Source: Setoptus koraiensis
Lineage: Eukaryota; Animalia; Arthropoda
Reading direction: 5' to 3'
DNA length: 64,000 nucleotides
Assembly: GCA_048013815.1 (NCBI GenBank)
Contig: CM106586.1
Coordinates: 13,206,001 to 13,270,000 of the forward strand
In this document: piece after piece, positions 16,452 to 50,200 of the stretch
Layout: every line of letters begins with the position of its first letter
How positions within the stretch are numbered: position 1 is the first letter of the stretch
Program-made: the position numbers and the translations under genes
The notes under the pieces: model-generated
What the model saw: the letters and a program-made list of their open reading frames with translations, nothing else
What the model was told of the DNA's origin: nothing
Databases searched by the model: none

Positions 16452-19079
16452 CTATCTGATTGTACTAGAATCATCTAGCTGCTGCAAGATATTATTATCA
16501 ACGACAGGCTGGGGATCTAATTCGGATACTTGAGGAGTATTCAGTGTATGATCTAATTGGTTGTTCTGAGCATTATTATTGTCGCTCGTTGAAGCATTCG
16601 TTGCAGAGTCGACAACACTAGTAAATCTTGGATTGGTGTTACTATTGCTGTTATTGGTACCGATTCCCGAGTTACTTGTTAGGTTAAATGATAGATTTGA
16701 ATCCAAGTTGAGCATAAGTGTAGAATTGAATGCAATCTCTTTCATCAATGTAGTATCTAAGCCATCTAGACCTAGACTATCTAATCTGGTTGACAACGCG
16801 TTGGTATCGGGTGTATTATTTCTGCTTGCATGTTGTGGCCTGTCATCAGACATTGGGCGTGGACTCCTTTCAACTATTTGCATGATCTTACCATCATCAT
16901 CAATGATTTCATGCTTCACAACAACTCTATTAGATAGTGGTGGTTTATGTTGCTGTTGCTGTACTTCGTAGTGATTTATTTGTTTACGGAGACACTGAGC
17001 AGCAGCGTCACCTTCAGCAGCACTAGTCAAATTGTCCAGCCTCTGTAGGTCCATTCTGACATTTGCATTAGGGGAGTGTTGTTGATCAGGAACAGGTGTA
17101 GAACTAAACTGCGGAGAAATACTGTTGCTAGCAATAGGCGCTGGCGAGTGATTATCTGTAGGGACATTTAGACGCTGATTGTTGACGTAGTAGCTTGCAG
17201 TATTAGTGCTGTAGGACGTATCCACTCCAGGTCGACTACCATCAGGTGTATCTTGAAATCTGGCTTGGTGATGATGATGACCTAGCAAGTTTGGCGAAGG
17301 TGTATTCTGTCGCGAACAGTTATCATTTTGAACATTGCGTTGCTGGTGATAATTGTAAGCTTGCTGATTGTGGGTACCAGAACCAGGTGCTTTTATTGCG
17401 AGCAAATTGGGTGATAATGATGGTGATGCAACATCCTGAGAATTTGTTTGTTGATTGAGTTGATAGTTGGCGAAGGTAGCCTTGTTGGTGTAGATTTTAC
17501 GGCCGTCTAAACCACCAGCTGTGTCGGCAGTCAGATTGACCTGTTGAGACATAGAAGTGGACGCGTTGAGAAGTTGATCGTGATTCGAAATCAATGCCTG
17601 ATTGGTGAGATGCTGTTGCTGTTGTTGAGGATAATGTTGTTGCTGTTGCAAATGAGAAGGTATAATTTGGGCCTGCTGGAAGTGGTGACTGTATGGCATT
17701 TGCTGGTGTTGCTGTTGATATTGCTGATGAGGTTGCAGAATGTTTTCTCTGACATAATTATTCAAGTCTATTTTTTCAATCTTTTGTCTTTTTCTAGCTA
17801 CAATATCTTCGTCGTTCTCGCAAGGTAAAAACTGGAATAGTCTTGGTTCGCTAACTTGATTATCAGACGGTCTCTTCAATTGTACACGAACCATAACCGG
17901 ATGTTGAATGTTCTCAGTGTGATATTTTGGTGTTCTGAAACAAATCGCGGCCTGTTTGTGCACGTCGTTAGGTTGAAATTCAGAATACTGTTCCCATAAT
18001 AATTTTCCATTTACCTCCTCATAGAATCTTATCTGGATATCATCTTTGGAGATTCTATCGCACAACAAAATCACCTCACGTCCTCCAGTGGCTGGCGCTG
18101 AACAATGGCTCAGCTTTGTTATTACCAAGTCTGACATGGCTTTTTTATCGTGAATAGGCTCGGAAACAACGGGCGCCAGGGGCACTGTGCAAGTCTTGCC
18201 ATCGGGGCCTTCTATGAATACTTGAAAGCACAATCTAACAACGTTTAAGTCTATGTTCGAAATACGCTGCTTATGGGCGAATCCCGTCCTGAATGGATCA
18301 ACTTGAATAGTTTCCCTAAGATTGAGCGATTCTTCAATATCTCTCTTTTTGACACATTGTACACCAAGACTAGTGAAACTACAAATCATATCAGAATTGT
18401 TATTCATAACAATGGTGCAAATACCTTTCTTGCATCCTTCTTTACCCACTATGTTGTGAGGGTGAGGCCTGAAAGGATAGTCTTTAGTGACGCAAGACAC
18501 TACTACAACTGCTTTTCCAACATAATTCATTACTTGTATTGTGGGGTATGTTTTGTTATCTGTAGTTGAATTTGCACCAGGCAATGAGCCCGCCGACCTG
18601 CCCTCACATTCATATCTAAACCTCAATGAGCATCTAGCTGGTTGTTCAATGATTTTAACATATGGTCTAGAGACTAGGCTCTTGGATGGTGTCATTAGTT
18701 TAGTGTTTGTGGACATTTGCATCCCTGATTCATTGACCATTTTGTTGTTGTACGTCGAAGGATTAATAGATGAATGATTCACTTGTTGCTTTACAATATT
18801 GTTGTTATTGTTTACAGGATTACCGTAACCACCATACTGGAATTGTTGTTCTTTCACTGCATGAGATTTATCTAATAAGATGTTGGCGTACAAGTTGTCT
18901 GTTTGTTGTTGTTGCTGTTGATCTCCTTGATTTTGATATTTCGATTCCTCCAAATTGATGAGAGCCTCTATATCGTCTAGAGTTTCATTGTGTTGATCAT
19001 TGTTTATTGTACTCTCATTATTGGTGACCTCTGGTGTCTTGCGTTCGTTCAAGAAAGGTTCTCTGGTCGTCTGATACAT
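16452..19079 (-). CDS. dl: Dorsal/Rel (class II NF-kB) transcription factor, single coding exon, 875 aa
   Basis: RHD (PYVKIIEQPA..LRFRYECEGRSAGSLPG, RPHPHNIVGKEGCKKG), IPT domain (GGREVILLCDRISKDDIQIRF), KRPS site, NLS RKRQK and a Q/N/S-rich C-terminus without ankyrin repeats. Confidence 0.97.
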   Translation of the reverse strand: MYQTTREPFLNERKTPEVTNNESTINNDQHNETLDDIEALINLEESKYQNQGDQQQQQQTDNLYANILLDKSHAVKEQQFQYGGYGNPVNNNNNIVKQQVNHSSINPSTYNNKMVNESGMQMSTNTKLMTPSKSLVSRPYVKIIEQPARCSLRFRYECEGRSAGSLPGANSTTDNKTYPTIQVMNYVGKAVVVVSCVTKDYPFRPHPHNIVGKEGCKKGICTIVMNNNSDMICSFTSLGVQCVKKRDIEESLNLRETIQVDPFRTGFAHKQRISNIDLNVVRLCFQVFIEGPDGKTCTVPLAPVVSEPIHDKKAMSDLVITKLSHCSAPATGGREVILLCDRISKDDIQIRFYEEVNGKLLWEQYSEFQPNDVHKQAAICFRTPKYHTENIQHPVMVRVQLKRPSDNQVSEPRLFQFLPCENDEDIVARKRQKIEKIDLNNYVRENILQPHQQYQQQHQQMPYSHHFQQAQIIPSHLQQQQHYPQQQQQHLTNQALISNHDQLLNASTSMSQQVNLTADTAGGLDGRKIYTNKATFANYQLNQQTNSQDVASPSLSPNLLAIKAPGSGTHNQQAYNYHQQRNVQNDNCSRQNTPSPNLLGHHHHQARFQDTPDGSRPGVDTSYSTNTASYYVNNQRLNVPTDNHSPAPIASNSISPQFSSTPVPDQQHSPNANVRMDLQRLDNLTSAAEGDAAAQCLRKQINHYEVQQQQHKPPLSNRVVVKHEIIDDDGKIMQIVERSPRPMSDDRPQHASRNNTPDTNALSTRLDSLGLDGLDTTLMKEIAFNSTLMLNLDSNLSFNLTSNSGIGTNNSNSNTNPRFTSVVDSATNASTSDNNNAQNNQLDHTLNTPQVSELDPQPVVDNNILQQLDDSSTIR

Positions 19080-23676: not shown

Positions 23677-26636
23677 TCAACTGTAACCGTGGGCGGCTGC
23701 CGCCACCGCTGAGTATGCCACAACCGCGGAAACGGGAGCCGGCACGTGGGCGTGGGCGGCCGCGGCCAGTACGGCACTGGTGGCCGAATGGTGGTGGTGA
23801 TGATGATGTCCGGTCACAGACGACAAGTGCTGCTGATGATGATGATGGTGATATAAACTGTTGGCCGCCTGATGATGGTGCCAAGTGTAGGGCGAGGGGG
23901 CCGTTGAGCTGAATAGGGCCGCACTCTGGCTTTGGTTGGCCTGGTTAGACGAGTGATCGGCGGAACTTTGACTCAAGTGGTGGTGCTGCTGTTGTTGTTG
24001 TTGGTGTTGGTTGACGTTTTGATTGTGCTGCTGTTGGTTGTCTTGCTGCTGTTGTTGGTGATGCTGGTGATTCTCGTATACTTGTTGCTGTTGTTGTTGG
24101 CGCTGATCATTTGTGCTGCTGTCCGTATTGTTGTTGGCAGTCATGGAGTTGTTGCTGTTGTTGCTCGTGGTCGCAGATAGGTGCTGCTGCTGTTGTTGTT
24201 GTTGGTGATGATGTGAAATTAACATATCGGTGGAGAACTGGTCATTTGATGCCTGTTGTCCCGCAATCATAGATTGATGTTGCTGCTGCTGTTGTTGACT
24301 TACCGTCGATCTGCCAATGGGAGATTGCTGCTGCTGCTGCTGCTGGTGACATAATGTCAGATTGTCGGCCTGCTGTTGATTGTTGTTACTGTTGTTGTCG
24401 ATGTTTGTTGTGTCGTGAGCCATGTGATGTTGATGCTGTTGTTGTTGCTGCTGTTGCTGTTGTCTCGATTGTCCGTTGTCCAACGAAGTGTTGAAGGCAC
24501 TAACAACGTTAGGCGGCAACGTGCTTATTGCCGACATGCCAACAACCGAGCAGCCATTGTTTGTCAAATTAAACAACGATGACGTAATTGCTGCCGACGA
24601 TTGCTGTTGGTGATGCTGGTGCTGTTGGCCCATAGAATTGCCAGTGGCCGCCAGATTGCTGGTGGAACCCGATGACGACAGTGTCGACGACGACGACGAC
24701 GCAGATGAGGAAGCGGAAGAGGTTGCCGGTGTTGTTGTTGCTGCGGAAACTGCACTCACTAAGGCAGCAGACGGATTGTTGTTGCTGTTGTTGTTGCTGT
24801 TGAGGCCCACTAATTGATGGTGGGTCGAGTTATTGGCGTGGCCAGCGCCAATTGAAATGAAATTATTATTATTATTATCTTGGCTACTTTGATTTGAATT
24901 TGCAGATGGATGCTGCTGCTGCTGATAATGTTGTTGCATTGTGTCGAAATTGCTCACCTGAGCAGAATACTGAGCTTGCTGTTGGTGTTGCTGGTGATGC
25001 TGTTGTTGTGGTTGCTGTTGTTGTTGGTGGTGCTGCTGCTGCTGGATATGATGATTCAAATGATGATGGTTCATGTTTAAATGATGGTGATGATGCTGAA
25101 AAGAGTGATGATGATGATCTAAATGGTGATGGTGATTAGACATGCCTAAATGATGATGATCGACGGCCGACGAGCCGCCATGATGGCCCAAATGGTGGCC
25201 GTGGTGCTGCCCGGACGAGCCACCGCCCAGCTGATGATGATGAATAGGTCCGCCAGTCGGCTGGCCGGCGGTGGTAGTGGCACTCGGGCCCCCATTAATA
25301 CTGATAGATATATTGATGCCGGCCGAGGCGCCGCTGCTTGTGCCACCGGTCAGCTCGGACGAGGCGTGTACAACTGCCGCGGCGGTTGTGGCGCCAACTC
25401 CAGTTGCGGTGATGGTGGCGGCGGCCGAGGCGGCCGCAGCGGTAGGGGCCGCACTTCCGTTTTGTGTGTGTGTGTGGTGATGGTGCCCAGTTAGAACAGA
25501 GTGATGATGATGATGACTTTGTTGCTGGTGGTGATGATGATAGGCGGCGGCAACCGCGGCCGCTTGCTGATGAGCGGCCGCCGCAGCCGATGCGGTAAAA
25601 AACTGATTCAAGGGCGCCCTGTGATGATGATGATGAACAGTGGCGGCCGCGGCAACATCGGCCACCGCCGCAATAGACGCCGCGGTGACCTGATGATGAT
25701 GGGCGTGGTGGTGATAGGCGGCCGCGGCCGCTTGGGCATGAGCCTTGGCGTAAGCGCTAGGCTCGTTGGGGGCCGGTTGTGTGGCTTGCGCGAGTCCCTG
25801 TCGTTCCGTTGGGTGGCGTTGCGGGCGGAGCGGCGTTGCGAGTCGGGCCAACGGGGTTGATGGTGAGATTCGGAGTTGATCGGGACAAACGGGTTGCAAT
25901 GATGGATAGAGGGAGCGAGGGAGGCAAATGAGAATTAGCTTGTGCGCGCGATTAGATGTAATCATGATTGTTGATTATTGTTGTGATTGATCATGTTGGC
26001 CGATAGCGGGCCGATCGAGGCACGCTGATTGCGCAACAATCTGCCACAGCGTCGCTTTATAGGGCTGATTGGCGTGATTCATCATTGTTCTAATTCAATT
26101 GGCACACACACATAACGGTCCATACATAACATATAACGGTATATATGTAACGTATAACGGTATACGGCGTTATAGGACGGATTTATGGATAGTAATGAGC
26201 GACGACACCCGCTCGCCATCCTATAGTGACGCAATGGTGTTTCGTGTGCTAAACGCCAGGCGGCCACATTAGTCACAACAAATAGTTGGCATAAAAGGAC
26301 TTACCTGAAAGTCAAACTTGTACGCGTACCGCTTGCCGTGCACCTTTTGCATGATGTTCTTATCATAATAATACCTGAGCGCCCTGCTCAATTTGTCGTA
26401 ATTCATGTTGGGCTTGCTCTTGCGCTCGCCCCAGCGTCTTGCCACCTCGTCCGGATCAATCAGTTTGAATTCGCCGTTTCGTCCCTCCCACAAGATGCAT
26501 CCCGAGTTGCTTGTGTCGGCGAGTAACTCCAATAGAAATTGCCACAATTGTATCTGTCCCGAGCCGGTGCCCGCCAGCCGCTGTTGGCTAACGGCGGCCG
26601 ATTGTATGGAATTTGGTGCGAACAGGCCGCACGAGT
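23677..26636 (-). CDS. Ets65A: ERG/FLI1/FEV (Ets65A-class) ETS transcription factor: ETS-domain exon 26636-26305 and terminal exon 25797-23677
   Basis: [15 protein letters not shown]...[59 protein letters not shown], then a phase-0 intron (26304-25798), then GLAQATQP as in the ERG/Ets65A class. The exon starts in phase 1 at Asp, like the D|PYQ junction of ERG/FLI1. Confidence 0.93.
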
Positions 26637-26814
26637 CTAGCATATTGCGCAATATAGTGGATAATAATAATAATAATAATATTTAGACGTACACGTGATT
26701 AGATATATTAGATATTTGCATGATTTCGTGCGATGTGGCGCGTGGTGAAAAGGAAAACAAATGGATAAGTGACGCAACTGCAACTCGCGCAGCCAATCTG
26801 GTCGCTGTGGGCCC

Positions 26815-26898
26815 GACAGTGTCAAGTCGCTGTTGGGTTGACAGTGTCTCGTCGCTGTTGGGTTGACAGTGTCTAGTCGCTGTTGGGTTGACAGTGTC
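26815..26898. repeat. 25-bp tandem repeat, ~3.4 copies (GACAGTGTCTAGTCGCTGTTGGGTT)
   Basis: Units start at 26815, 26840, 26865 and 26890. Confidence 0.9.
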
Positions 26899-28020
26899 GG
26901 GTCAGGGGTCGCCGTCAGTTTATGGGTGAACTCAAACAAAAACTGACACTAGTGCTGCTGGGGTATTATTGTTGGGGTATCACTGCTGGGGTATTATTAG
27001 TTTTTGCTCGTTATCTCGCTCGGTTTTCGGTTGCTTTCTTGGCGCGCACACGCGCGACGCCAAGCATGAATATGTTGCGCAATAATATCCTATGCTAATA
27101 TCCATTGTTGTCACTTGTATATTCAACTGGCGAGTCGTTCGGGCTGGGGGTGGAAATGAACTCACGCACAGCGAAACAGGCAACAGCGACGGGCCCAATG
27201 AGGGGGCCGACACACAGAGCCCAAGCCGAAGCCGATTCTATCATTGAAGCAACGATCTAGCCGCTGGCCGCTGAACAAATAGACAGCACGCGCGCGCCAA
27301 CTATAATACCATACACGCTATACTATATACACATACGGGCACGTGGCTTATGTAATCAAGTTTTATGCGCACTCTCGAGCATTGTGTGATCATATTGTAT
27401 TTAAGCCCGCTATATGCTGCTTGGTGTGCATGCCGTGTGCTATATGGCTCGTGCGGTATATGGCTCGTGCGGTATATGGTGTGCGAGCGGGGCTGGGTGG
27501 GGGTACAAACGAGCGGGCGCCGCATTGGCCCGAACCGGGCCTCGAAGTGGCTTCGAATTAGGCGCTGCACGAGAGCGCGATCAGCGATCACCGTCACCTA
27601 GGGGCGCACCACAACAAGTAAACATTGGTGGCCCAAATTGCTATTTGTTAATATGCCAGCCTATTTGCGCTTTTTTATTAACCTCTCTGGCCTCACTTTC
27701 CACTGCCACTGCGCTTTTTTGGTTTGTTTTTCGGTCGCTATCTCGCTCTTTTCGGCTCTCACTCTCTCGCTAACTGTGGCATGCAGTCTGTGCCAATAGT
27801 AAATAAACACGCGCTCGCACGAGTCGCGCTTAGCGCGCCTATATCAAACGTATTACGTAACGTTTGCGATATAGGCGCGCAAATAATAATATCAACGAGT
27901 AGCAACGAGTAGCCAGCATCTCAATCATGGCTCATATAGCAGCCATAACTGTCAGCCAGTATATGAGATTACTGAATAAACTTGACCGTTGGATAACTGT
28001 CAATTGCTGTCGTTGTCGTC

Positions 28021-28021
28021 G

Positions 28022-28059
<38 letters not shown>
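28021..28059. repeat. (GTT)n microsatellite
   Basis: Direct reading. Similar tracts lie at ~35701-35739 (GTT), ~37392-37427 (CAA) and ~41080-41114 (CA). Confidence 0.95.
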
Positions 28060-30588
28060 GCTGCTGCCGTTGGTCAACAGCTCGTGTGTTTGCCCAGCGC
28101 TTGGCACCGCTCGGGTTAGTTACGCTCCAGGGAAATGGAAACAGATAAAAAATACCATCACTGTCTCACTGAGATCAGTTTACCCTGCCAGTGTCTTGCA
28201 TCTAGTTCGCCTTTTCTATCTAATCTTTTGGTGTTTATCCACCGATCGATGCGGTCTTGTATTGGATATTGGACACTGGATAACGGAGAAGAAAACTTCA
28301 ATTTTCGATCACACCACAAAACCCAAAAACCCACACAAACCGGTGAAATTTTTACCTGGTTACAGTGATTTGAACTCTTTGACTCTACTGACCCAAATGC
28401 GAATCGCATGCACATCACAGCGATGACACATGCTCACTTCACTTGCATAAAGAAGAAAAATTCCAACCGGAAGTAAACGTTTACATACATAACACTCGCA
28501 ATTGGGCGGCAATGTTGCGGCACAATTGTTCGGTGGTTTTAATTGTCGCTTCAGTTTTATTTGTTCTGACAATGACTGTCACCGGCCCTGTATCGATACT
28601 TTGCCAAGTGGATAGTCAATAGCTAATTCAACGGCTGGCTGTTTTGTGAGTGCAAATTGCAAGTGACTTTGTTTGCGTCGAGCGTCAATCGTTGGCCGAC
28701 ATCAATGGTTAGGCACTCATTAGCCTGTGACGATGGCGTAAAATCTATCTATTAGGTGTGTTGCGTAATAACGCAACAAACAGTGAGCTCTCATGTGCAG
28801 GCTAAACAGGTATTTGTACCGTCGTGGACAGGGGCCCCGCTCACAAAAGGTGACAGCCTGCTGTGCAGCACTGTGCCACAGACTCTGTGCCACGGGGCGA
28901 GCCAAATCATTTTTTAGCAAAGCCGGTTGCGCGGATGCAGATGCCTCAGATCCTTCAAGAGGCTCACTCAATGAACGCCATGAAGGCAACAGTGCAGGCG
29001 TTACGCAACGCACTTACGCAACGTGCTGCACTGTTGCAGCGCGTGCTTTTGCGCGTGCTGTTGCGCTGTCGCGTAGTATTGCGCTGTCGTAGTGTGGCCA
29101 TTGTAAAGTCAAGAGGTTGTTCGTGACGAACATTTTAAAATGATATACATGCTGGCATGTTGCAAATAATTTAAAAACAATAACAAATGGCTTGTTTGTT
29201 GCGCAACGTCGTCACGAGCGTACACGTCGAGTCATACCGTTACCGTTATTGTAGTGACTGCACTTGGTGACTGTCACACTGGGGCCCACACTAGACTGCC
29301 GCCACCAGAGACAGAGCGTGGCGGCACTTGTCACGCTGTGTGTCATCTTTCAGTTGACTTGCTTCGGCCTCTCTCGAAACAATCTTGTTTCGCTCTGCTT
29401 CATTCTGGTTCGTTCTGGCGCATTTCGGCGCCTTTGGGCTGCTTGCGCGTCGCCAGAATGAGCCAGAGTGAGCCAGAGCGAGCCAGAGCGAGCCAGAATG
29501 AGCCAAAACGAACCAGTGGCACAGTGGAGCAAGTTGTGCCACCAGCCGCAATTGCGTCACAATGGCGTCTCATGCGTCACGTCAGAAGCGGGCCCAAATT
29601 TAGGGGCGCGACAATGAGCCGGCGCCGATAGCGCCGCTGATTGTGACAACATTCGCTTCTTTGTTGGGGCCTCAATGGTGACATTCAATTGGTCGTGCTC
29701 GCGTTATTCATCATCGTCGTTTCATTTGCCGGCAGGCGCACACGACACATTCGAGTTGTGCAAATTGGGCACGTATTATCGCCATGCTCATAATTGTAAC
29801 AATCGCGCTCGCGTAATGCTCTTAGCCGTGATTTGGCGCGCTGTCATGATCATTGTTTGTGTCCGATTTGGCCAAATCAACTTGTTTTGCGGCCTCGCGA
29901 GCATTTGTTACACAATTTCGCATTGCATAACAAATGCTCCATTCAGCGGCGACTCGACCCAGCGGCCGGCGGCGGCCCGATCCAGCGGCAACCGCGCTCA
30001 ATGGCGGCCCAACGGAATCAAATTAAATCAAGTTCGCGTCTGTCCATCATTATACTTTCGTATTCGTATCGTCATAAGTGCGCCGTCTGACTCAGTCACT
30101 GCTCACGTAATCACTGCAACTGGCGCCACGCGGGCACCGCCAACGCAATGCCGCCGGTGCCCGCGAGAACGTGTTTGGCATTATTATCTGTCTGATAATA
30201 AGGGCCGCGCGGATAATTCGCGCGCGCCGCATTCAGTTTGTTAATGCGCGGCGCGCGGATTTCAGTTTGTAGTAATTAAGTTGTTGTGCTCTCTGACAGC
30301 CACAATAACTGCAATAAACCGCTCTAACAACTCAAATCCAGTTGCGCCCCACTCACAACAAGCGAGCAAACTCGCCAATAGGGCCAATGATTGCGCCCCC
30401 ACCAGAGCACTTGCTTTTTTACCGGCCCCGAGCCCAAAGTTGCCGGCCCCATGCAAGCTGGCGATGCGGCCCCGCTAATCGCATTAACTCGCCATTTTGG
30501 GGGCCGCTTGCTCGGCGAGCATGTATCGGTTTTGGGGCCGGTGAACAGTGCTCAACGCTATCGCTCGTTTGCGCTCGTCCGCCCGCCA

Positions 30589-30646
30589 TTCGACCCAAAA
30601 CCGGCGTCCGACCCAAAACCGGCGTTCGACCCAAAACCGGCATTCG
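30589..30646. repeat. 18-bp tandem repeat, ~3 copies (TTCGACCCAAAACCGGCG)
   Basis: Direct reading. Confidence 0.85.
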
Positions 30647-31765
30647 GCCCATATTCGCCGGCGCCGGCATTGCGTCACAACTGGTCGGGCGTATCAATGA
30701 ACGGTCGTGAGACACCAACCGGCAGCAAGCAATACAAAAAGATCCGAATCGTGTCGCGCTCGACATTTGGCGACGCCGACCGGATAAACCGGCCACCGGC
30801 TGCCCGATCGAATCGCCTGATCAAATTGCCTGATCGAATCACCGGCTCGCTGCGAACTCGCCACGGTGCGCAGAGGGGCCCCAACAGCGACAAGCGCAGC
30901 GCGTGGGAGAGACGAGAGCTGGAATTGGCGCCTGAGCGGCAGTCGATTTAATTAACTCGCGCCCGTCCGTCGATGATGCAGGTCAACAACTGCGCGTTGG
31001 TGCTTGCTTGTTGTTGCTGTTGTCGTTGTCGGTTGTTGCTGTCGTTGGTTGTTGCCGTGGCCGGTTGTTGCTGCTGCGACCCTCGAATGCCCGTCGCACC
31101 GGCAAACAAGATGATAATGAATGATTATCTAGCCGGAGCGCGAGGGCGGCGCGTGCGGCACAGCACGACAACAATGCGACACAAACAATTGTCGCCGACA
31201 CATTTGAAACGCTCAACAAACAACGACCGGCAACAACGGGCAACAACCGGCAACAACAAGCACGCGCTTGTTACGTAAACGGGCGAAAATACGCAAATGC
31301 GAGCGGCGCCGTTGCAACGCGTACGCAAATGCCAACTACGCGGCCAAACAACAACAAACAAATGCAAACGCCGGCGTGCAGCCACGCAACTGCCAAATTA
31401 AAGTTTCATTAATAAACAATGAATATCTCGTGTAGCCGTGAGTGTGCGTACGGCTAATATTTTTGTTTGTTAATATTTGTTGGCGGCGCAACAGCGACAC
31501 GCGCTCATTTGACAGGCCGAGGTGCCAACAGTAACAATTTTTGTCACTTTTACACCCACGCGTTTTGTCATTTGTGCGCAAACTGTGCACACTGTGCCGG
31601 TGACCTTTGTCCGGCGGCGCGCTGGCTCGTGTGCCCGCTCGACGAGCAGTGGCCATAAATAAATGATAAATAAATTTATCACGCTGCGCCTGACTCTGCA
31701 CGCCGTATTTATGGAATGGGGCCAGATTTGCGCAAATGAGCACATAGCGCAAAGTGCTCGCATAG

Positions 31766-31863
31766 TGATCATGAATAGTGAGCACTGATCGTGAATAGTG
31801 AGCACTGATCGTGAATAGTGAGCTCTGATCGTGAATAGTGAGCTCTGATCATGAATAGCGAGC
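31766..31863. repeat. 20-bp tandem repeat, ~5 copies (TGATCGTGAATAGTGAGCAC)
   Basis: Direct reading. Confidence 0.9.
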
Positions 31864-33340
31864 ATTTCATGAGCGATTGGGCGCAAAGCGATGGGCGCAA
31901 TAAGCATAATTGAGCAACGATTGAAAAAGATGATTTATTGGCCGCGCCGGCCGACAACCGGCCCGCATTGTTGCCTAGTGACCATTGTCCAGTTGTCGGC
32001 GGCCATAAGTCACAACTGCGCGCCGACTGGATCTGTTTACTATCCATTATTATCATATCGCGCTTGATGTGGGCCCCCGATGGAAGCGTTCGCATTGTAT
32101 CGGTTGCGCTCAATTGAGTTTGTCTTGTTATTATTCTGGCCGCCATTATCCATTATTGCGCCCGACGTTCACATGGCGCCGGTTGTCGCACGCTGGCCAC
32201 GCCGACCGTTTGTGCGAATATCTGTGTCCGTTTACGTTGTCCACTAAACGGACTTTAGTTTAGACTGCCAATCGGACTGACAGTCCGAATTGGACTGACA
32301 ATTGTCAGGCGCTGTTAATAAATACAGGCCAGTGAGGCGCCAATTATTGCACAACCTTTGCCAGACTCGCTGTCATGTCCGTTCCACTTGGCATGAGCTA
32401 CAATCGCCCGCGAGCCCCAACGGGAGCCCCCGTGCCAAGAGTCACAACAAACGGGGCGCCAGTTGGGGCCAGTTGGGCCCAGTGAGGGGGTTTTTTAGCG
32501 CAGTTTGTGTGGCCGCGTTTGTTTGTTTGTGTGCGAATCATTGATTTCGCGAGCACCGGCTCATTTAATGTATTCATTGACACCGGTTCAAGTGGATCGC
32601 TCGTGTTTGACACGAGCACCCAAACAAATAAATAATCGCCGACTCGCCAACCCAGATAACGCCAGCGGATAATGAATGATGGCCTCTCGAGTTTGGGCAC
32701 CCTTGACCAGCGACTCTTGATTTTTGACCAGCGCCGCTCGCCGATGCCGGCGCTGCACTGGGCCTATAACAGGTGACCGTGGCCATACAACGTGATACTC
32801 ATTATTATTATTATGTTATCATCATATCGGCGGCTCGCTCGAACGCTGCCGAGTCAATGGGTCCGATCTGTTCTATTATGCTCTGTTCTGTTTATAGGCC
32901 AATGTTTGTGTGGCACGCGTTCCGCTTGGCCAGCCACAATTGACCAGCTACAACTGGCCAGCTACAATTGGCAAGACGGCTAATGGTGAGTTATGTAATG
33001 TGTGTCCGTTTAACCTCGCTGCTCGCTTGCCATGAACTTTAACTTGGCCGCCGCCCCTCTCATGAACTCTCGACGCTGGCCCGTTAGCCGGCCCGCTGGC
33101 CGGCCCGTTAGATGGCCCGCTGGCTGACACGGCCGATAGTGGGCCGTAACCCGCTTGCCAGTTAATAAATGGCCGGCCATTGTTGTTGGTGGCATTGTCG
33201 CCAGTCATGGCTGGCGCCATCTATCTAGGCCTATAATGACGCAATAATTCACGTGCATCATTGTGTGTATTTACGCGTGACGGTCTGTTTGCGATTTGTG
33301 GGTGCACTTGTCGCATATCCACATACCAGCATGTATTTAC

Positions 33341-33546
33341 GGATATCCACAGATACCCACAGATATCCACAAATATCCACAGATATCTACACACATCCAC
33401 AGATATCCACAGATGTCCACAGATGTCCACAGATGTCCACAAATATCCACAGCTATTCACAAATATCCACAGCTATTCACATATATCCACGGACATTCAC
33501 AAGTGTCCGCAGACATCCACAGAAATGCACGGATATCCACGGATAG
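33341..33546. repeat. 10-bp minisatellite, ~20 copies (GATATCCACA consensus)
   Basis: Direct reading; variant units include GATGTCCACA, GCTATTCACA and AATATCCACA. Confidence 0.92.
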
Positions 33547-33987
33547 TGACAGGTAGTGGCCAGCAGTCACAGATAATCAATTTGCGACAATGGCGGGTCG
33601 TGCCGCACCAACCCGCACCCGTTACATAACAGCGTCTGTTATGCAACAATGACTATTGTGAACATATTGTGAATAACAATCGATCGATTATTCATTAGTG
33701 AGTGAGCTGCTTTCTGTGCAAATTGGCGACACACAATTGTCAATTGCAAGGCACTTGCAATTGGTGTGACGCGCTAAATCGATTATCCGACTGGATACTG
33801 GAGCAAGCAACACTGTTGCTGCCTGGCGAGTTCAAAGTTCACACATCGCCAACAAATCTAGCGAATCTAATAAACTATTTGATAACTAGCGGGCACGTTA
33901 CGCAACTAGCTACCGATTGCGTAACAGGCTTGTGGCGTAACAGGCCCGTTGCGTAACACGCCCGCTCAAATTGGATTAGTGACTTAC

Positions 33988-34969
33988 CGTCGTCGTCGAG
34001 AAACTCGTGCTTAACTCTATTCAATAGAGGCTTGTGGTGATGATGTTGAACTGCGGAGGCCGCATCTATGTAATGATGATGATTGTTGTTGTTGATGGCG
34101 CGCTGATTGACGTTGGCCGCACAAGTTGTGCCGCTGTCGGCGCCACTATCCGGCCCGTAAATGTTGCCCACTAAACTCATTCTGGCGCTGTTGTTGTTGT
34201 TTTTGTTGTTTGCTTGCTGTCGGCTGTTGGGCCCGCGCGACACTGTCGTTGGCTGTGCACCTGTAATGTGCAACGACGACGACGACGACGTCACCCTGTT
34301 GTTACTGTAGTTGCTGTTGTTGCTGTCGTTGTTGTTGTTGCTGCTTCTGTTGTTGCTGCAGTTGCTGTTGTTGCTGTCGTTGTTGTTGTTGCTGCTTCTG
34401 TTGTTGCTGTTGTTGCCGTTGTTGTTGCCGTGTTGGCTGCTGTTTGACTGGCTTTGAGCGACAGCTATTGAGGCAGACGCCGGCGACGATCGATGGCTGT
34501 TTGTGGTTGTCACGCTGTCACTCGAGAGCCGATTGTGCTCATTTGCATAATAGCTGTTGTTGGTGTCGTACGAGCAAGATGTGATGTTGTTGGCGCTATC
34601 TGTTGTTGCTGCGCCGGCCCGATGGTGCCGAAATCTGAACTGGTGATGATCCAAATAATCAATTTTTGAGCTGGCTTGGCCGACGTCTGAACGTTGATGC
34701 TGCTGCTGCTGATTGTGATAATAGTTGTTGTACATTCGATTGGGAGACTTTAGTGGCACCATCAATGGGCCAGTTGGGCTTGCATCGACGCCGGGCGATA
34801 ATGAGGGCGTTGTATTTTGCGATAATTGACCGCGATCCGATTGCGAATCGTCGTCACTTGAGCTGGGCGCTTGTTGATTGCAATGGTCAAGTGTGGTGGC
34901 GCTTTTCATGCACTTTTGCTGTTCACAGCCTGGCTCGGACTCGCCCAAACTGTTAACCTGTGGCCGCAT
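33988..34969 (-). CDS. Probable upstream coding exon of the ETS gene; homologous to the Dorsal C-terminal region
   Basis: 385-codon ORF with ATG at 34969 (a possible acceptor near 35030 allows a further upstream exon). Strong donor G|GTAAGT at 33988/33987 is phase 1 and compatible with the acceptor at 26637/26636 (predicted intron 7351 nt). Spliced product is 1144 aa. Seven colinear motifs are shared with Dorsal. Confidence 0.7.
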
Positions 34970-35701
34970 CAGCGATACAATCAGCTCAGATCGAAGGCAA
35001 CGGATTTTCCTATTGCGCAACAGCAACAATCTGACAGATTATCTAGTCGGCACTATATGTTGCGTCAGTGATCACTGATGGCTTGCTGTGTTGTTGCTAG
35101 ACTTTGGCCTCTCAATTGGCGGGCTCAATTAACTGACTGTTGCACTGGCTCTCTTATCTCTCGAATTGTATTGTTGCTCATGGATTGAATGGCCTCCTTT
35201 CGCTCACTCAACTGCCGTGTGGTCAATTGCTGTCTGGCAATCGATTGTCGCGCATTTAGTTACTGTGACAATTCTTTCGGGGGCCCCAATGGCATTTCGA
35301 CGCATACACGACAATGAGTCACTTGTGTCTACCTTTATCTAGCTGGCGCAATTGCTGATTTGGGTAATTTGGGTAAAATGGTTGTTTGTATCATCGAACG
35401 TAGTGTTCCGACAGTCGGTGCCCACTAGCATTACTGGCGCTGGCTTGCACTGACTACGGGCCCCCGAATCGCGGGGCGAAATTGCGCGCCAACTTATGCC
35501 TGGCCCCAGTAGTTCGCGTAACACGCATGCGTCACAATGCGAATTCAATTCAAATTTGCCATTTTGCTTCAATTGGCAATCTGTACAAGTCTGCGCATAG
35601 CGCACAATGCACACTTCACACTGCAAACTGCACACTGCGCCAACAATGAGCATATAGCGGCGTTCGTCGTCGCTTTGGCCAGCTAGCAAGTTGCGTCATC
35701 G

Positions 35702-35740
<39 letters not shown>

Positions 35741-36351
35741 CAGTGACCGTTGCGTTTCATTTTTTCTTTGTTCGCTCGGCTGCTTCGTATCAGCGGCGCT
35801 CGCTGCTAACGAGGCCCCAAGACAATCGCTGGACAGCGCAAACAGTGAGCGACAGTGTCGCTCGGAGCCTCGTTAGATCGATTCAGTGCGCGCTTGGCCT
35901 ATATAAAGTGGCCCGGCTGGCCCCTAATACACAAATGTATGCGCAGGCCAGTGAATATCAATGAGCCAGACAAACTGGCCGCTGGCTGGCGGGCCCGTAC
36001 GGCGCGCTTTGTGTCGCAATTAAACAATTGTCGCGAGATAAGATCGCCTCATGAGCTGCCCAGACTGCGCCGGCAGCCTGTGCGGATTGCACGCGATGGA
36101 GCAGCTTGTGCACTGCTCCATCTCGTGCACTGCTCCATCAGAAGTCTCTATCATGAGATGTCTAGCCAACTTGGCTAACAAGTTGTAAGTCAAGTTTGTG
36201 GGCCGCACAGATTGTGCGCGCCGCTCTCGGTTTGGGGGCATTTGCGCGCGCGGTGAGCGCGCCGGTGCCTGTGACGGGTGACATGACTTACGTCACGGGT
36301 ACCACCGCAAGAGCCAACTGGCACGACTGCAACAGAAATAACAGTCGACTG

Positions 36352-36411
36352 CGGCCCGACGGCCAACGCGGCCCGACGGCCAACGCGGCCCGACGGCCAA
36401 CGAGAGCCGAC
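36352..36411. repeat. 17-bp tandem repeat, ~3 copies (CGGCCCGACGGCCAACG)
   Basis: Direct reading. A 15-bp repeat (GAGCCGACGTTGCAC) lies at ~36886-36939 and an 18-bp repeat at ~37260-37346. Confidence 0.85.
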
Positions 36412-37392
36412 GGGCCGACGAGAGCGATGGCTAACGGTTAACACGTGCCACGGTTGTGTCGCGCGTAGTGGCGGCGGTCGCTGATCATTATCATTGTTGG
36501 CCAGTGAACGAGCGAGCGAATTTGTTTTCGTTGTGAGTCGTTGTGCGCCGCGGTGCGCCGCGTTGTCTCCAGTTGCAGTTAGTTATGTAACTGATAGTTG
36601 TTGTTGTCGTTGCTGTATTAGCCGCATTTGCGGAGCGCCAGCCAGCAGCGACCGAGCCGAACGGCGCTCGAGCGTCTTGCCCGGCTGTCGCGGTTGCTGT
36701 TGTTGTCGCCGTTGTTGCCGCTGTTGTTGCCGCTGTTGTCGCCGTTGTTGCCGCTGTTGTTGCTGTTGTTGTTGCTGTTGTTGCTGCTGTTGTTGCCGCT
36801 GTCATTTATGGTTTCATGACTTCATTACATTTATTCATGCCAGTCACACTGGCGTGCGACTGGCGCGCCGCGCTGCACACTGCGGCCGAGCCGACGTTGC
36901 ACGAGCCGACGCTGCACGAGCCGACGTTGCACGAGCCGAGTACGTGCACAGCACAGAATGAGATGAAATCAGAGTGTCGCTTATCGAGCTTATCATCTCG
37001 ACCGCTCGCCTGCCACTCAATAGCCTATATAACCATCAGCAGCTAGATAACTGGATAACTAGATAGCCGCCAGAGAGCCGCCAGAGAGCCGCCAGAGAGC
37101 CGCAGTCAACGACAGCGCGGCCAACATTGTCGGCATATTCGCCCATGAATAGTCGGTCTTGGCGGCCCGTGTAAGTGTGCCAGTGTCCACTTATCTCTGT
37201 CCACAATCTCACACAATCTTGTTAAACGTATTTCTGCTCACTACGTTACATAATACGCTGTGCGCAATATTATTAGTGTGCGCAATATTATTAGTGTGCG
37301 CGATATTATTGGTGAGCGCGATATTATTGGGGTGTGTGCGCGATATTAGTTATGGCACGTTGCTGCTCCAAATCACGCCCTGTGTGATTTGC

Positions 37393-42541: not shown

Positions 42542-45500
42542 TCAATACCTCCCAGTGAATCTGTGGAACTTTTCATAGTTAGCATGCATATCTCGGAATA
42601 TTTCTCTACTTGACTGATCCAATCTGGCATGAATCATTTCGAATATAGATCCCTGCGCTCCGCCAGCGTGGGTTTTTCTCTGGTTAGCTTGGGCATTCTG
42701 GCTGGCTTTATATTCCTCTTGGTGAGCGTCAATTTGATTAAATATCCTAAAAATTCCTTCATTCAGATGAAGCCTCACTCGTGGATAGCATGTCACAATT
42801 TGAACGTCTTTTATGTAATTAGAAATTAGATAGGGCGCACATCCAATGAAATCCGTCCGCATCAAGCTCAATTGCGTCATTATTTTGGCAGTGTCCAAAG
42901 CGAGAACCTCAAAACGATGTTCTATCTCTCCAAATTCGGCCTCATTGATGGTTGCTTTAATCTTCTCTAGTTTGAGCCTATCAGAAGCTATCAGTAAACA
43001 ACGAATGAACTCAGTGAAAACAAGGTTGAATGTGGGCATGATATTGAGTGCTGTAACTGATTTCTTCAATAAGCATTCATTCAGGACGGAGTATGTAAGT
43101 GATCCCAAATCCAAGAATTGATTGTAAGCATATTGACTATTTTGAGCGTAGCCCCTGAGATTAGAGAATGATATCATCTGTAGAGAACTAAATGTTAATT
43201 CCTCTTTCAAGATCTTGGATTGGTTTGGGCTCCTAAATAATAACACTAACGATGTGAGACATCTAATGCTAATGCAACATCTTACACTGGTCATGGACTT
43301 GTGTACGCCTGCATCCTTGAAGAGATGTATTGACTGACGGCACTCAGATTGCTTTGCTACTTTTGTTATAGAGGCTATTATTTTTTCAAAATTGTCCGCA
43401 AGAATCTTTGATTTCTCTAAATTGTAGGTAGGAGATGCCAAATAAACTGATTCTAATAGAATTAGCGAACGCACAACCAGGCTATGATCGCTGATATCAC
43501 AATCTAGTATTCTATCAAGAATTTTGTCTAAGCTGTCTTGGAAAGTAGTCGCATCGCAGGTTGAAAAGATCAAGGGTGCCACCTTGAGTAGGATCCTTTT
43601 AATTTCTGGGTAGCAGACTTCTTCAACTTCTGCTATGTGAGTTGTGGTTAAACTCTTCGTCTTTGATAGTTTTGTTTCATCTAAGGCTACCTCTGCAAGC
43701 TCTTTCAACATTTTCTTGGAAATTTTCCTACTACTTTTCTCATCATTAGTCTGGTCGGTTTCTCTAGCGATGGATGAGATTATTGTGTCATGAAGCTGGG
43801 TGATAATCCTCAGTTTCAATGCAGATTCTATCTGAGTCCGATATCTATTGTAAAACTCGATGAGGTCAATAAACTGGTCATCGCATAAATGATGGTTCAC
43901 CTTCTTCTTAGACTTGCGCTTTGCTTGTATACAATAACCGATATTCTTGACAATTGAGTCAAATAGTTTCTGTAGGAAGGCTTCATTTTCTTGAAGAGCC
44001 TGCATATCTTTCTGAATAATAAATAGTTTGATTAGAGACACGGTCGCTCTCGTTAGGATTTTGTCATCGTTGAGAAACAAATTGTCTTGATTGGCGATAA
44101 CTAAATTCTTCAATTTTTGTATGCACGGATTTATAGATAGAAGCAATTCGGGCTTTAGAGATAATTGTATGGAGTTTCTGGATTTTTTGATAGACTTTCT
44201 CGAAGTGCAAGTATTTGTGGATAGTATCTCATTAATCATTATCAATTGTAGATAAGTACCGACAGCTTGATCGAGTTCTTCATTAATTATAAAAGCTACA
44301 TAGTCTGACAGAGTGCCAGAATCGCTTTGAGCACAATTCATATAAGTATTCAAAAACAAGCTCATAAATCTTTCAAATATCAAACATGATTTCGATTCTT
44401 CAAACAATTTTGTGTTGTTGGTAAGACAGTTGATCAACTTGATCAAGTATTGACCTGCAGGTATGAGACGAAAGAAGATAGATACTCCTCTTTGTGGCAA
44501 ATCTTCCATCAATCCGGCCAAATAGCCTAGAATTTGTTCCACTGTGGCCAGTGAAATGAATGGGGAAGAAGAAATCAAAACAATCGAGGCCGCAGTGAAT
44601 ATTCGCAAACGATTAGGCATGATCAAGTATTGATGTTGGGCCAGGCTCTGCACAACATTTATCCAATTAGATATGTAGCTTGTCTGCACTGTTTTAGAAG
44701 TGAGAGATGTGGAGGCTCCATTGCAGGCACTTTGTATTGATGACCAGAAGTCTATAGAATTGAACGATTTATCTGCTTCAGGTCCATCAAGTCGCATGAC
44801 CGATAGGAGTAGTTCTTCAGCAGAAATGTGCTCAAATGTAATTTGCTCAATTATAGCTAATAGTGGGGACGCTTTAGTATCCTCATCGTGCTTCCTCTTA
44901 TTTCGCAAGATGTTGCTTTTTAGGTGGAGCAGAAGGGTAGTCACAAGCTGCGTTTGCATAGATATGTCGGTCTCTAGAAGTGCGTCAGTAACTAGGCACC
45001 TAGAAGGCTCATGTGGAAAGGCAAGGCGATCTTTAACAATTGCTTCAGATATAGTTGGATACAAATTTGAATCTAGGTAGGGCATTATCGCGCAAATAAA
45101 CTGTTCATCCATTCTTATGTTATGTTGGCTGTAGTTTGATTCAACTAACTTGGTGACTATTTCCTTGGCCTTGGTCCTTATCAATGTTAGATGTTGCTGA
45201 TATTGGTCTAAATTTTCTAATATGGCGTAGAATCGCAACTTTTGTAGATACAAGTCAAATGCCGCCATGAATAGTTCAGCATCGTCAGTGTTCTTATAGA
45301 AACAAGTCCGATAGACTCTCTTCCAGCCAGTGTCTGAGGTTACTTGAGTCAGACATGATAGATCATACCATTTTAAGTTATCTATATCCGAGGAATCAAG
45401 CACAGGCTGATCTCCTAATTGATAGGTCAATTGTATTATTTTAATGTTTGCAAAGGCCTTGTAGAGCTTTAACAGGTGTGTCATGTGTTCTGAATCAACT

Positions 45501-45709
45501 AGATCTAAAATACCAGACAAAATAGTTTGCGTATCCTGGATGCGTTTGTTGTATCTTTTCAACAATCTCAATGGTATTAGATTGTCGATGGCCTCGACAT
45601 GATTAAGCAATGTGGTGAATTCTTCGAAAGCCGATGTTGTTGGTTCATTCACAATATTACTATTGCATGCTTTCCATTGAGCTAGGAGATCCTCCGTTAC
45701 TGGGTTCAT
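42542..45709 (-). CDS. URB2: URB2/Npa2 ribosome-biogenesis protein, single exon, 1055 aa
   Basis: Long helical, Leu-rich ORF. The C-terminus (APYLISNYI...VRLHLNEGIFRIF...IHARLDQSSREIFRDMHANYEKFHRFTG) follows the Urb2 C-terminal domain pattern as recalled; not searched. Confidence 0.75.
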   Translation of the reverse strand: MNPVTEDLLAQWKACNSNIVNEPTTSAFEEFTTLLNHVEAIDNLIPLRLLKRYNKRIQDTQTILSGILDLVDSEHMTHLLKLYKAFANIKIIQLTYQLGDQPVLDSSDIDNLKWYDLSCLTQVTSDTGWKRVYRTCFYKNTDDAELFMAAFDLYLQKLRFYAILENLDQYQQHLTLIRTKAKEIVTKLVESNYSQHNIRMDEQFICAIMPYLDSNLYPTISEAIVKDRLAFPHEPSRCLVTDALLETDISMQTQLVTTLLLHLKSNILRNKRKHDEDTKASPLLAIIEQITFEHISAEELLLSVMRLDGPEADKSFNSIDFWSSIQSACNGASTSLTSKTVQTSYISNWINVVQSLAQHQYLIMPNRLRIFTAASIVLISSSPFISLATVEQILGYLAGLMEDLPQRGVSIFFRLIPAGQYLIKLINCLTNNTKLFEESKSCLIFERFMSLFLNTYMNCAQSDSGTLSDYVAFIINEELDQAVGTYLQLIMINEILSTNTCTSRKSIKKSRNSIQLSLKPELLLSINPCIQKLKNLVIANQDNLFLNDDKILTRATVSLIKLFIIQKDMQALQENEAFLQKLFDSIVKNIGYCIQAKRKSKKKVNHHLCDDQFIDLIEFYNRYRTQIESALKLRIITQLHDTIISSIARETDQTNDEKSSRKISKKMLKELAEVALDETKLSKTKSLTTTHIAEVEEVCYPEIKRILLKVAPLIFSTCDATTFQDSLDKILDRILDCDISDHSLVVRSLILLESVYLASPTYNLEKSKILADNFEKIIASITKVAKQSECRQSIHLFKDAGVHKSMTSVRCCISIRCLTSLVLLFRSPNQSKILKEELTFSSLQMISFSNLRGYAQNSQYAYNQFLDLGSLTYSVLNECLLKKSVTALNIMPTFNLVFTEFIRCLLIASDRLKLEKIKATINEAEFGEIEHRFEVLALDTAKIMTQLSLMRTDFIGCAPYLISNYIKDVQIVTCYPRVRLHLNEGIFRIFNQIDAHQEEYKASQNAQANQRKTHAGGAQGSIFEMIHARLDQSSREIFRDMHANYEKFHRFTGRY

Positions 45710-47214: not shown

Positions 47215-50200
47215 GTGTACATGTTTGCCAGTGAACAGCAACAACAACAACAACAAGTGCCTGCTGAGGCATCGTCGTGAAGGAAAACATTATTACTAAC
47301 ATCTAGTCTGTGGTGTTAGATCCTCTAAATGAACACACACACACACATTTGCCTGACTAACACATTTGATATGGCGAATTAATAGCACTATCTTTGAGAA
47401 CCAACAGCCATCCAGTGTATCAATGGCATGTCTGTTACTTTCCTAAATCGATTCAATCGGCTGCCAATGGAGGCTCAATAGAAGATTTGTGAGATAGAAA
47501 AAAAAATATGTTTATCTCATTTTGTTGTTGATACACACGCACAAATCATCATCAAATAAATAAGTTATCGCCTCATTGAATCTATCACTCGCTCAGCCCA
47601 ATCAGCCAACAAACGACAAACAATGTATGTGTGTTTGCATGATGACAATTAAGCTCAATAATTTACCCGATAGATAAAATAATTACAACTGATTAAATCT
47701 ATAGTCAATACAGTGATAATACTAATATCAGTAATAATAATAGTAATAATAATAATAAAATCACTCGCGCACAAGCTGACAGATTGCTCTGTATTCATTT
47801 TGGACGCCACTTGTTGAGTGTGCTCATCACTCCCTCTCTCACAATATAAACACAAATACAAATCGTGCACTCTAATGGTGTGTGCACGCATCGCTATTTA
47901 TCAAACTCATCACTATTATTATTAATTATTATTATCATTACTATTATATCAGTGTGTAGTATATCATCATTGAAATTATCATCATTACCATTAATTAATC
48001 GATTAATTATAATGACGATACGACAACAATTTACATTCTATTATTATTAAATTAGCACGGCAGTGTGTTACGCGCCGCGGCAGGAGAAGCAACAAACAAG
48101 CAACAGCAGCATCACAACAAAACAATTATACAATAATAATAATAGTACAATCACATTATACAAGACAATCACACAATGTTTATGATATTGCAAAACTTAT
48201 CTTTTGGAACGTTGATACTTAATTCAACATTACTAGCCTTTAGTGCCTACTTAGTCTCTGGTGGATGGAGATATGTCAAGGTTGTTCTAGTTACGTTGCC
48301 TCGTGATTTAACTGGACTCATTCGCCTCGTTCAAACACATTGGTATTTGTATAAATTAAGGAGACGAAACGCCACAGTACCACAAGCTTTCAAAGACAAT
48401 GTCGAGAAAGAACCCAACAGAATTGTCTTCTTTTATGAGGACCAAAAATGGACGGCCAGAGAAATTGATATTCTCTCTAACAAGGTGGCCAATGCCTTCC
48501 TAGAGCACGGCTTCCAACCCGGCCAAGAAGTCGCTCTATTCATGGATTCAAGGCCAGAATTTGTGGCCATTTGGTTGGGTCTTGCCAAGGCTGGTATTGT
48601 TTCTGCATTGATTAATACTAATCAACGCCTAGATACTCTAGTGCATTCCATAACTGTAGTCAATTGTAAAGCTGTTATATTTGGAACGGAACTAAGCTCA
48701 GCCATTGATGATGTTTATGACAAACTTAAATCGCAATCATCATTAGAATTCTTTCATTTTGGTGACAACAAACAAACCAAAATAGCTCAATCTAAATCGT
48801 TACAACAAATGATTAGCGAAAGCAGTAGCAGTGATCCGGTAAATTTAAGCCTTGGCAACTTTAGTGGTAAGTCCCAGTAGCAACATCTATTGCCTTTGCA
48901 CACAAAAGCCTCTTGTATTACTCATTATGCAAACAAGTTGCTAACTGCTTTCTATTTCCTTCCTATCGCCTATTGTTGCTTACTATTTTTAAACTGTTCA
49001 ACAATGTAGACCGATTGTTTTATATTTATACTTCTGGCACGACTGGTCTGCCCAAGGCCGCTATAATCAAGCACAGTCGCTACATGTTTGTTGGAGCGGG
49101 CCTAAGAAACTTAATGGGTCTCAGCAGAGAAACTATTTACACCAGTATACCATTGTACCATTTAGCGGGTGGAACTATGGGAACCAGCCAATGTTTATTA
49201 TTTGATAGCAGTATGGTCATTAAAAAACGATTTTCCGCATCTCAATTTTGGTCAGATTGTATCAAATACAATGCCACAGCTGCTCAATATATTGGAGAAT
49301 TGTGCCGTTATTTATTATCACAACCGCCACGGCCCGAGGATAATCAACACAAAGTCAGAATGATGTTTGGTAATGGTTTAAGACAACAGATTTGGTCAGA
49401 GTTTAAGAATAGATTTAACGTTAAGCAAATAGGAGAATTTTACGGTTCGACAGAGGGCAATGCAAATATTGTTAACTTTGATAATACTCCTGGAGCGTGC
49501 GGATTTGTATCGCGAATATTGCCAATAGTTTATCCAGTAACTCTCATTAAGTGCAATCCATTGACGGGTGAAGCAATCAGAAATGAGAAAGGAGTTTGTA
49601 TCAAATGTGGACCTGGAGAGACAGGCGAGTTTGTTGGTAAGATTATTGAAGGTGACCCGACGCGATCATTTGATGGTTATGTCAACAAGGAGGCAACAAA
49701 CAAGAAAATCGTTCGCGATGTCTTCTGGAAGGGCGACATGGCCTTCTCATCCGGTGATCTCCTAGAAATGGACGAGTATGGTTATGTTTATTTCAAAGAT
49801 AGAACTGGTGATACTTATAGATGGAAGGGTGAAAATGTCTCTACTATGGAAGTGGAGGGTATTATTAGTGAATTGCTCAAGCAACAAGATTGTGTTGTGT
49901 ATGGAGTTGAGGTGCCAAATTGCGAAGGAAAGGCAGGTATGTTGGCTATTGCAGATAAGCATGCCGATCTGAAGAAACTAATCAACGATATGCGCCAAAG
50001 ATTAGCACCGTTCGCCATTCCAGTTTTCATCAGAGTAGTAGACGAAATTGAAGCTACGGGAACATTCAAACTACCAAAAGTAGGATTACAGCAACAGGGT
50101 TACAACATAAATAAGATCGACGATCCAATTTATCTAGTTGATTTGAAGAAAAATGATTGCATTAGAGTGACACAACAAGTTTATGATGACATCACTAGCG

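Follow-up and report, generated by a model that had tools for sequence, protein, structure and literature searches.

A chimeric ETS gene beside Dorsal

In the 64,000-nucleotide stretch of Setoptus koraiensis DNA analysed here (the window), an ETS gene on the minus strand encodes a predicted product of 1144 amino acids, in which a Dorsal-tail-like N-terminus of 327 residues is followed by an ERG-type ETS domain and a His/Gln-rich C-terminus. This chimeric gene is real and, among the relatives examined, appears to be restricted to its lineage. Its first coding exon, which is spliced to the ETS exon, was probably copied from the 3' part of Dorsal, the gene next to it. A full-text literature search returned no earlier description of a Rel-tail/ETS gene. 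Gene birth through partial duplication and exon recruitment is a well-known kind of event, and the mechanism is not new. The interest of the locus lies in a clean, datable natural case of a transcription factor gaining a new N-terminal, putatively regulatory region. Here a piece of the disordered tail of a neighbouring gene appears to have been turned into a coding exon by way of a splice donor already hidden in two conserved codons, and a single window holds the parent gene, an intronic relic and the spliced transcript.

We began with the layout of the window. Read along the minus strand, the genes and open reading frames (ORFs) follow one another as Urb2 (42542-45709; Pfam Urb2), the upstream neighbour of ETS exon 1; the ORF that holds exon 1 (33875-35029, first ATG at 34969); the ORF containing the ETS-domain exon (26652-26269); a long His/Gln-rich ORF (25965-23677); and Dorsal. 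The Dorsal gene is a single exon with a single ORF of 875 amino acids (16452-19079), identified by its orthologues and by matches to RHD_DNA_bind (E 3.3e-65) and RHD_dimer (E 1.1e-36). A gene with an Fz domain (sFRP-like; plus strand, 14811-16073; Pfam Fz) is convergent with Dorsal, as it is in the relative L002. Urb2 lies ~1-6 kb from Dorsal in the relatives L003, L005 and L006; in this window the ETS gene and its Dorsal-like exon lie between the two. In L005 the order is ETS, Dorsal, Urb2; ETS and Dorsal share a strand there, and ETS is the upstream one at a distance of 3 kb. In Fragariocoptes (L001) and L007, the 7-7.6 kb preceding Dorsal hold no ETS gene. The adjacency in L005 indicates that the ETS gene and Dorsal are old neighbours and that the copy came from an adjacent gene, while the differences in order and orientation between L005 and the window indicate that the region has been rearranged.

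Exon structure and splicing of the chimeric gene

Exon 1 (33988-34969, minus strand) comprises 327 codons and one further base, counted from the ATG at 34969, the presumed start. Its frame contains no stops, compared with 10 and 12 in the two alternative frames, and its product is Asn/Ser-rich (17% Asn, 17% Ser, 3.1% Tyr). A 51-nt tandem repeat within it (34296-34435, minus strand, 2.8 copies) encodes an Asn/Ser run, and the contigs of the sequencing runs break at this repeat. The exon ends in GACGACGACG|GTAAGT, a phase 1 donor (G|GTAAGT) whose last exon base is 33988. The first-pass annotation had given the ORF as 34969-33962; the ATG at 34969 stands, but 33962 is where the similarity to Dorsal ends, and the exon itself ends at 33988. 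Intron 1 (26637-33987, minus strand) is 7351 nt long, GT..AG and phase 1, and is defined by a contig from the run X8 described below. Its acceptor, AG|A after CTAG, opens exon 2 at 26636, and the ETS exon requires one base to complete its first codon.

Exon 2 (26305-26636, minus strand) encodes the ETS DNA-binding domain. It is followed by a predicted exon 3 (23677-25797, minus strand; 706 codons and a stop) that would encode the His/Gln/Ala-rich C-terminal region. The prediction is based on the open frame and on peptide continuity in relatives: the sequence across the proposed exon 2-3 junction, FDFQ|GLAQATQP, is present as the same uninterrupted peptide in L005 and P0121. Joined, the segments 34969-33988, 26636-26305 and 25797-23677 amount to 3435 nt and 1144 codons with a terminal stop only, and the peptide across the exon 1-2 junction reads ...VKHEFLDDD-D-SCGLF.... 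Two other features of intron 1 were apparent. A 10-bp tandem repeat (GATATCCACA, ~20 copies) occupies 33342-33545, and run contigs break there as well. An in-frame ATG at 26641-26643 (MLDSCG...) lies immediately upstream of the exon 2 acceptor, so a transcript begun within intron 1 could give rise to an ETS protein that lacks the Dorsal-like part.

To follow the splice at the transcript level, we used four sequencing runs aligned to 31000-36900. One of them, X8, is labelled as another organism and is presumed to be RNA. It yielded a 181-nt contig (depth ~5) that covers 34140-33988 and then continues with 28 letters foreign to the local sequence. These 28 letters have an exact and unique match in the window at 26636-26609; the contig therefore skips 7351 nt between a canonical GT and a canonical AG. 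Depth in X8 was zero across the aligned part of intron 1 (31000-33987), as RNA would give, and the two differences listed for this run, at 34046 and 34049, both fall at third codon positions and are synonymous. Support for the splice thus consists of one short contig from a run presumed to be RNA. It joins exactly the sites, 33988 and 26636, that had been predicted from the first reading of the DNA, and the resulting frame is open over 1144 amino acids.

The ETS domain belongs to the ERG/FLI/FEV class

The ETS domain in exon 2 matches Pfam PF00178 (Ets) with an E value of 4.7e-36 over profile positions 1-80 of 81. Its assignment to the ERG/FLI class, made in the first-pass annotation, was confirmed by comparison with structures in the PDB: human ERG, FLI1 and FEV chains scored 172-187 bits (ERG/FLI1 E 1e-54), and ETS1 and others at most 133. 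Among 120 homologues, the best family matches were D-ETS-3 proteins (Ets65A type), the arthropod members of the ERG-FLI-FEV class without a PNT domain, with ~73% identity over 139 amino acids. The mite protein shares with them the ETS domain and a 12-residue family continuation. Exons 1 and 3 matched no Pfam family, and no PNT domain was found in the spliced isoform, in which exon 1 joins the ETS exon directly. Unlike these relatives, the mite protein has the 327-residue Dorsal-tail-like exon, which was seen in 0 of the 120 family members, and at ~1144 amino acids it is longer than most family matches (260-570). A Rel homology domain (RHD) is missing from the chimeric gene, the sole RHD of the window being Dorsal's own; the chimera thus carries sequence probably derived from a Rel tail and yet does not encode a Rel protein.

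Exon 1 resembles the tail of the neighbouring Dorsal

The first-pass annotation had listed seven blocks shared by this ORF and the C-terminal region of Dorsal. We found all seven in both the exon 1 ORF and Dorsal residues ~540-739 (16863-17462, minus strand), and in identical order. Block 7 (33959-34051, minus strand), which extends across the donor into the intron, gave a significant match: in BLASTP, ORF residues 327-357 aligned to Dorsal residues 706-739 with 19 of 34 identical (E 4e-6). When each protein was searched against the 64-kb window by tblastn, block 7 was recovered with E values of 1e-4 and 4.5e-4 and was the only non-self match with an E value below 0.9. The spacing of blocks 1-5 is similar in the two sequences, at ~25, 29, 24 and 20 residues in Dorsal and 30, 26, 26 and 23 in the ORF. 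Block 6 of the ORF stands further from block 5 than in Dorsal, a difference accounted for by the 51-nt tandem repeat.

The upstream blocks called for more care. Unrelated Gln/Asn-rich low-complexity proteins attained raw Smith-Waterman scores of 100-140, and we therefore discarded raw scores as evidence. Because low complexity inflates such scores, we relied instead on anchored orthologous linkers and on local shuffles. ORF residues 61-195 scored 88 against the 175 residues preceding block 7 in the window's own Dorsal, compared with 27-59 against the equivalent linkers of ten Dorsal orthologues; the orthologous linkers scored only 38-68 against one another, and reversed sequences gave 66-81. 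The segments scored in this way covered blocks 1-5, with block 6 lying outside them. In composition-preserving shuffles, blocks 1-5 gave p values of 0.0005 (global), 0.0085 (20-residue windows) and 0.026 (10-residue windows), and an earlier run had given 0.003 and 0.013. Composition-corrected BLAST, by contrast, returned for the upstream blocks one alignment of 136 columns with 30% identity and only 20 bits. Blocks 1-5 thus outperformed shuffles of matched composition but drew no support from the corrected BLAST.

These results bear on a different reading, in which exon 1 is a true ETS exon of non-Dorsal origin, the resemblance in VKHE..DDDGK is convergent and the other blocks reflect a shared Asn/Ser/Gln/His-rich composition. 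The 20-bit score and the high raw scores of other low-complexity proteins are what such a reading would predict, as is the weak match of the ORF to a family profile: a profile of the motif from which the window's own Dorsal had been left out gave an E value of 0.4, and the profiles overall ranged from 0.17 to 0.4. We nonetheless judge a non-Dorsal origin to be quite unlikely. Block 7, the sole match in the window, includes lineage-specific residues beyond the family core (HKP.L.NRV and ..ER), the blocks are collinear with their spacing kept, the linker of the window's own Dorsal scores far above those of the ten orthologues, and ETS and Dorsal are old neighbours. Judged from block 7 and from the performance of the upstream blocks against shuffles and the ten decoy linkers, the similarity is above chance and the parental sequence of exon 1 is identifiable. 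Homology to Dorsal is firm over the last 34 residues of the matched segment and likely over residues ~540-739 as a whole. Chance or convergence could account for blocks 1-6 taken alone, but is an unlikely explanation for the whole similarity given block 7, the collinearity and the adjacency of the two genes.

A hairpin motif in the Dorsal tail of eriophyoid-type mites

Analysis of Dorsal orthologues placed the window in a clade with the eriophyoid Fragariocoptes setiger and about twenty mite sequences from Logan, ENA and JGI assemblies (support 100/100); the closest RHD is 76% identical to that of the window's Dorsal. The comparison brought to light a strongly conserved motif in the Dorsal tail of these mites. 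It spans 20 residues, with the consensus LVVRREIIDNEGKVMRLVDR, and is present in 11 members of the clade (the window's Dorsal and P0002-P0007, P0010, P0013, P0014 and P0021) and in 0 of the other 109 matches of the Dorsal search. In the window's Dorsal it reads VVKHEII-DDDGK-IMQIVE (residues 720-738; 16866-16922, minus strand). In an AlphaFold2 model built with the alignment of the 11 orthologues, the motif takes the form of a beta-hairpin, with strands at positions 31-37 and 43-49 of the modelled tail (pLDDT ~82). The hairpin is the only confident element of this model, whose mean pLDDT of 53 is poor, as expected of a disordered region. A second conserved block, acidic and hydrophobic (SLDRIDTAELMRDM.FNSNMD.NLGS.LS), lies downstream of the hairpin, and a third, LNTPQVSELDP, is found in early branches of the clade. 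The motif and the block that follows it were absent from the Dorsal proteins of the other mites, spiders and insects retrieved. The top score in the Dorsal search belonged to Leptinotarsa decemlineata P0001 (665 bits, 53% identity over 32% of the query), which outranked mite sequences that are much closer. Its score is probably inflated by Gln-rich low complexity.

The part of Dorsal that exon 1 resembles consists of the linker, which is poorly conserved, together with the first strand of the hairpin and its acidic turn. The ETS donor is the Gly-Lys codon pair GGTAAG, and the identical six bases stand at the same place in Dorsal. Since the donor cuts within the turn, only the first strand and the turn are exonic. 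The intron opens (33962-33987, minus strand) with the GTAAGT donor, followed by a relic of the second strand, KSLIQFER, which aligns to IMQIVER and VIQIVDR of Dorsal orthologues. Compared with the Dorsal of eriophyoid-type mites, such as F. setiger P0010, exon 1 resembles the linker and the strand and turn VV[KR][HR]EIID..GK, whereas the spliced chimera lacks the RHD, the second strand and the distal blocks LDRIDT..LM...FNS...NL.S.LS and LNTPQVSELDP; the complete clade-specific hairpin motif is therefore not present in it. In the Dorsal gene itself, the GGTAAG at the motif's Gly-Lys codons (16889-16894, minus strand) is a good match to a 5' splice site within a single exon.

A rival reading is that the ORF chiefly serves, or simply persists, as a free-standing transcript for a 364-residue, RHD-less, Dorsal-tail-like protein and that the form spliced to ETS is a minor isoform. 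Such a protein would keep both hairpin strands and end at the stop at 33875. The frame does remain open for 37 codons beyond the donor, and the relic retains the ...ER ending of the second strand. Furthermore, in the run X4 an unbroken contig (34305-33488) crosses the donor at a depth of ~30, the same as over the exon, with flanks at 3-8. Were X4 an RNA run, unspliced transcripts would be abundant and could dominate there, and the free-standing protein might exist side by side with the chimera; the contig depth is, however, a whole-contig mean. The second strand has also drifted from the invariant pattern, and the read-through tail to the stop (33875-33961, minus strand) is unrelated to Dorsal, consisting mostly of a 16-bp tandem repeat (33919-33964) directly after the relic. 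X8, moreover, carries the spliced form. On balance we regard a free-standing protein as unlikely and favour the reading in which exon 1 serves the ETS gene.

Origin, direction and age of the copy

We propose that a partial copy of the 3' part of Dorsal (residues ~540-739), made up of its variable linker and of the conserved motif that comes first in the tail, was placed upstream of the adjacent ERG-class ETS gene and became its first coding exon. The Gly-Lys codons of the Dorsal motif, GGTAAG, would have been recruited as a 5' splice site, through which exon 1 is linked, in phase 1, to an ETS-domain exon that lies 7.35 kb further downstream. The 327-residue Asn/Ser-rich N-terminus would then derive, probably, from a Rel tail. 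A different route had been suggested, in which the ETS-Rel pair was duplicated in tandem and one ETS gene and one RHD were subsequently lost. It left no trace: neither tblastn nor a Dorsal-family HMM run over all six-frame fragments detected a second RHD or an ETS relic in the window. Partial duplication of the 3' part of Dorsal is the simpler account.

The direction of copying was addressed by comparing N-termini. The motif is conserved in the 11 Dorsal orthologues of the clade, and neither it nor any likeness to exon 1 was found in the 120 ERG-class proteins, two of which come from the same mite clade. In P0121 and L005, the ETS gene instead has a short His-rich N-terminus in one ORF with the ETS domain. 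This distribution indicates that the motif is Dorsal's own and the ETS gene the recipient, and thus supports copying from Dorsal to ETS, as the first-pass annotation had it. An RV.VK.E-type site occurs in the N-terminus of vertebrate FLI1 and ERG, and this might be taken to favour the reverse, a Dorsal tail segment gained from an ancestral ETS N-terminus. With the motif present in the 11 Dorsal orthologues and missing from the 120 ERG-class proteins, we rejected this direction as extremely improbable.

The copy is old. Different codons are used at 13 of the 19 identical residues of block 7, and GC3 in exon 1 is 0.63, close to that of the ETS exons (0.70 and 0.56) and well above that of Dorsal (0.31-0.37). 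Both the codon differences and the ETS-like GC3 argue against a recent copy, in agreement with the earlier suggestion of an old duplicate whose synonymous positions mostly differ. The frame of exon 1 is open over its 327 codons despite ~30% identity to Dorsal, and the two differences in X8 are synonymous, both in keeping with a possible constraint on the protein. At the same time, the likeness is mostly to lineage-specific residues of the window's own Dorsal, which fits a duplication within this lineage, after its split from the relatives examined. Consistent with this idea, orthologues of exon 1 were not recovered by HMMER against 1.84 billion representative proteins (0 matches), by a word-indexed search with the Dorsal tail region or by tblastn against the loci of seven relatives. 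In L005, the 5.2 kb that precede the ETS domain proved to be free of any Dorsal-like exon. Among the relatives examined, exon 1 therefore appears to be restricted to this mite lineage.

Possible roles of the captured segment

The segment had been described in the first-pass annotation as the Dorsal transactivation region. Dorsal's distal conserved blocks, acidic and hydrophobic in character and the more activation-motif-like, are missing from exon 1. With a variable linker and half of a hairpin captured and these blocks left behind, that description exceeds the evidence. The N-terminus may act as a disordered regulatory or activation region for a factor that binds ETS sites. As the spliced protein retains half of the hairpin motif, it probably does not reproduce the motif's original function. 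It is doubtful, though conceivable, that the borrowed segment keeps a docking or modification site for a regulator of Dorsal. If it does, an ERG-type ETS factor would have come under Dorsal's Toll-type upstream control, or would recruit Dorsal's cofactors. Capture of an exon from a neighbouring gene would then have naturally rewired two transcription-factor networks of development and immunity. We also considered whether VKHE and the acidic residues after it constitute a SUMO site, and ruled this out as a general reading of the motif, most orthologues having VRRE.

Two known kinds of fusion offer points of comparison. EWS-FLI1 and EWS-ERG are somatic oncogenic fusions with a Tyr-rich, SYGQ-type N-terminus, and the mite protein likewise combines a low-complexity N-terminus with an ERG-class DNA-binding domain. 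The analogy drawn at the outset does not extend further: where the EWS region is rich in Tyr, exon 1 is rich in Asn and Ser and has 3% Tyr, the mite chimera is germ-line and evolutionary in origin, and its activation role is putative. A closer parallel is Drosophila jingwei, a chimeric gene born by partial duplication and exon shuffling. As in chimeras of that type, a partial gene copy would have been recruited as a coding exon of another gene, with a new junction and an open frame. The mite gene differs in that its donor lies immediately beside it and gave a disordered regulatory tail instead of a folded domain, and in that conserved Gly-Lys codons already held a latent splice donor.

Other genes in the window

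Additional genes were noted elsewhere in the window. The segment 47200-58300 holds a fatty-acid-transport-type gene in two inverted, near-identical copies (48176-50217, plus strand; 52946-54990, minus strand), together with an arginine-kinase gene (56986-58161) and a truncated copy of it (50725-51279). Three consecutive long ORFs on the plus strand (3660-9729) resemble one receptor tyrosine kinase gene. This putative kinase has a Gly-rich extracellular part and Gln-rich insertions, and by eye it is ALK/LTK-like.
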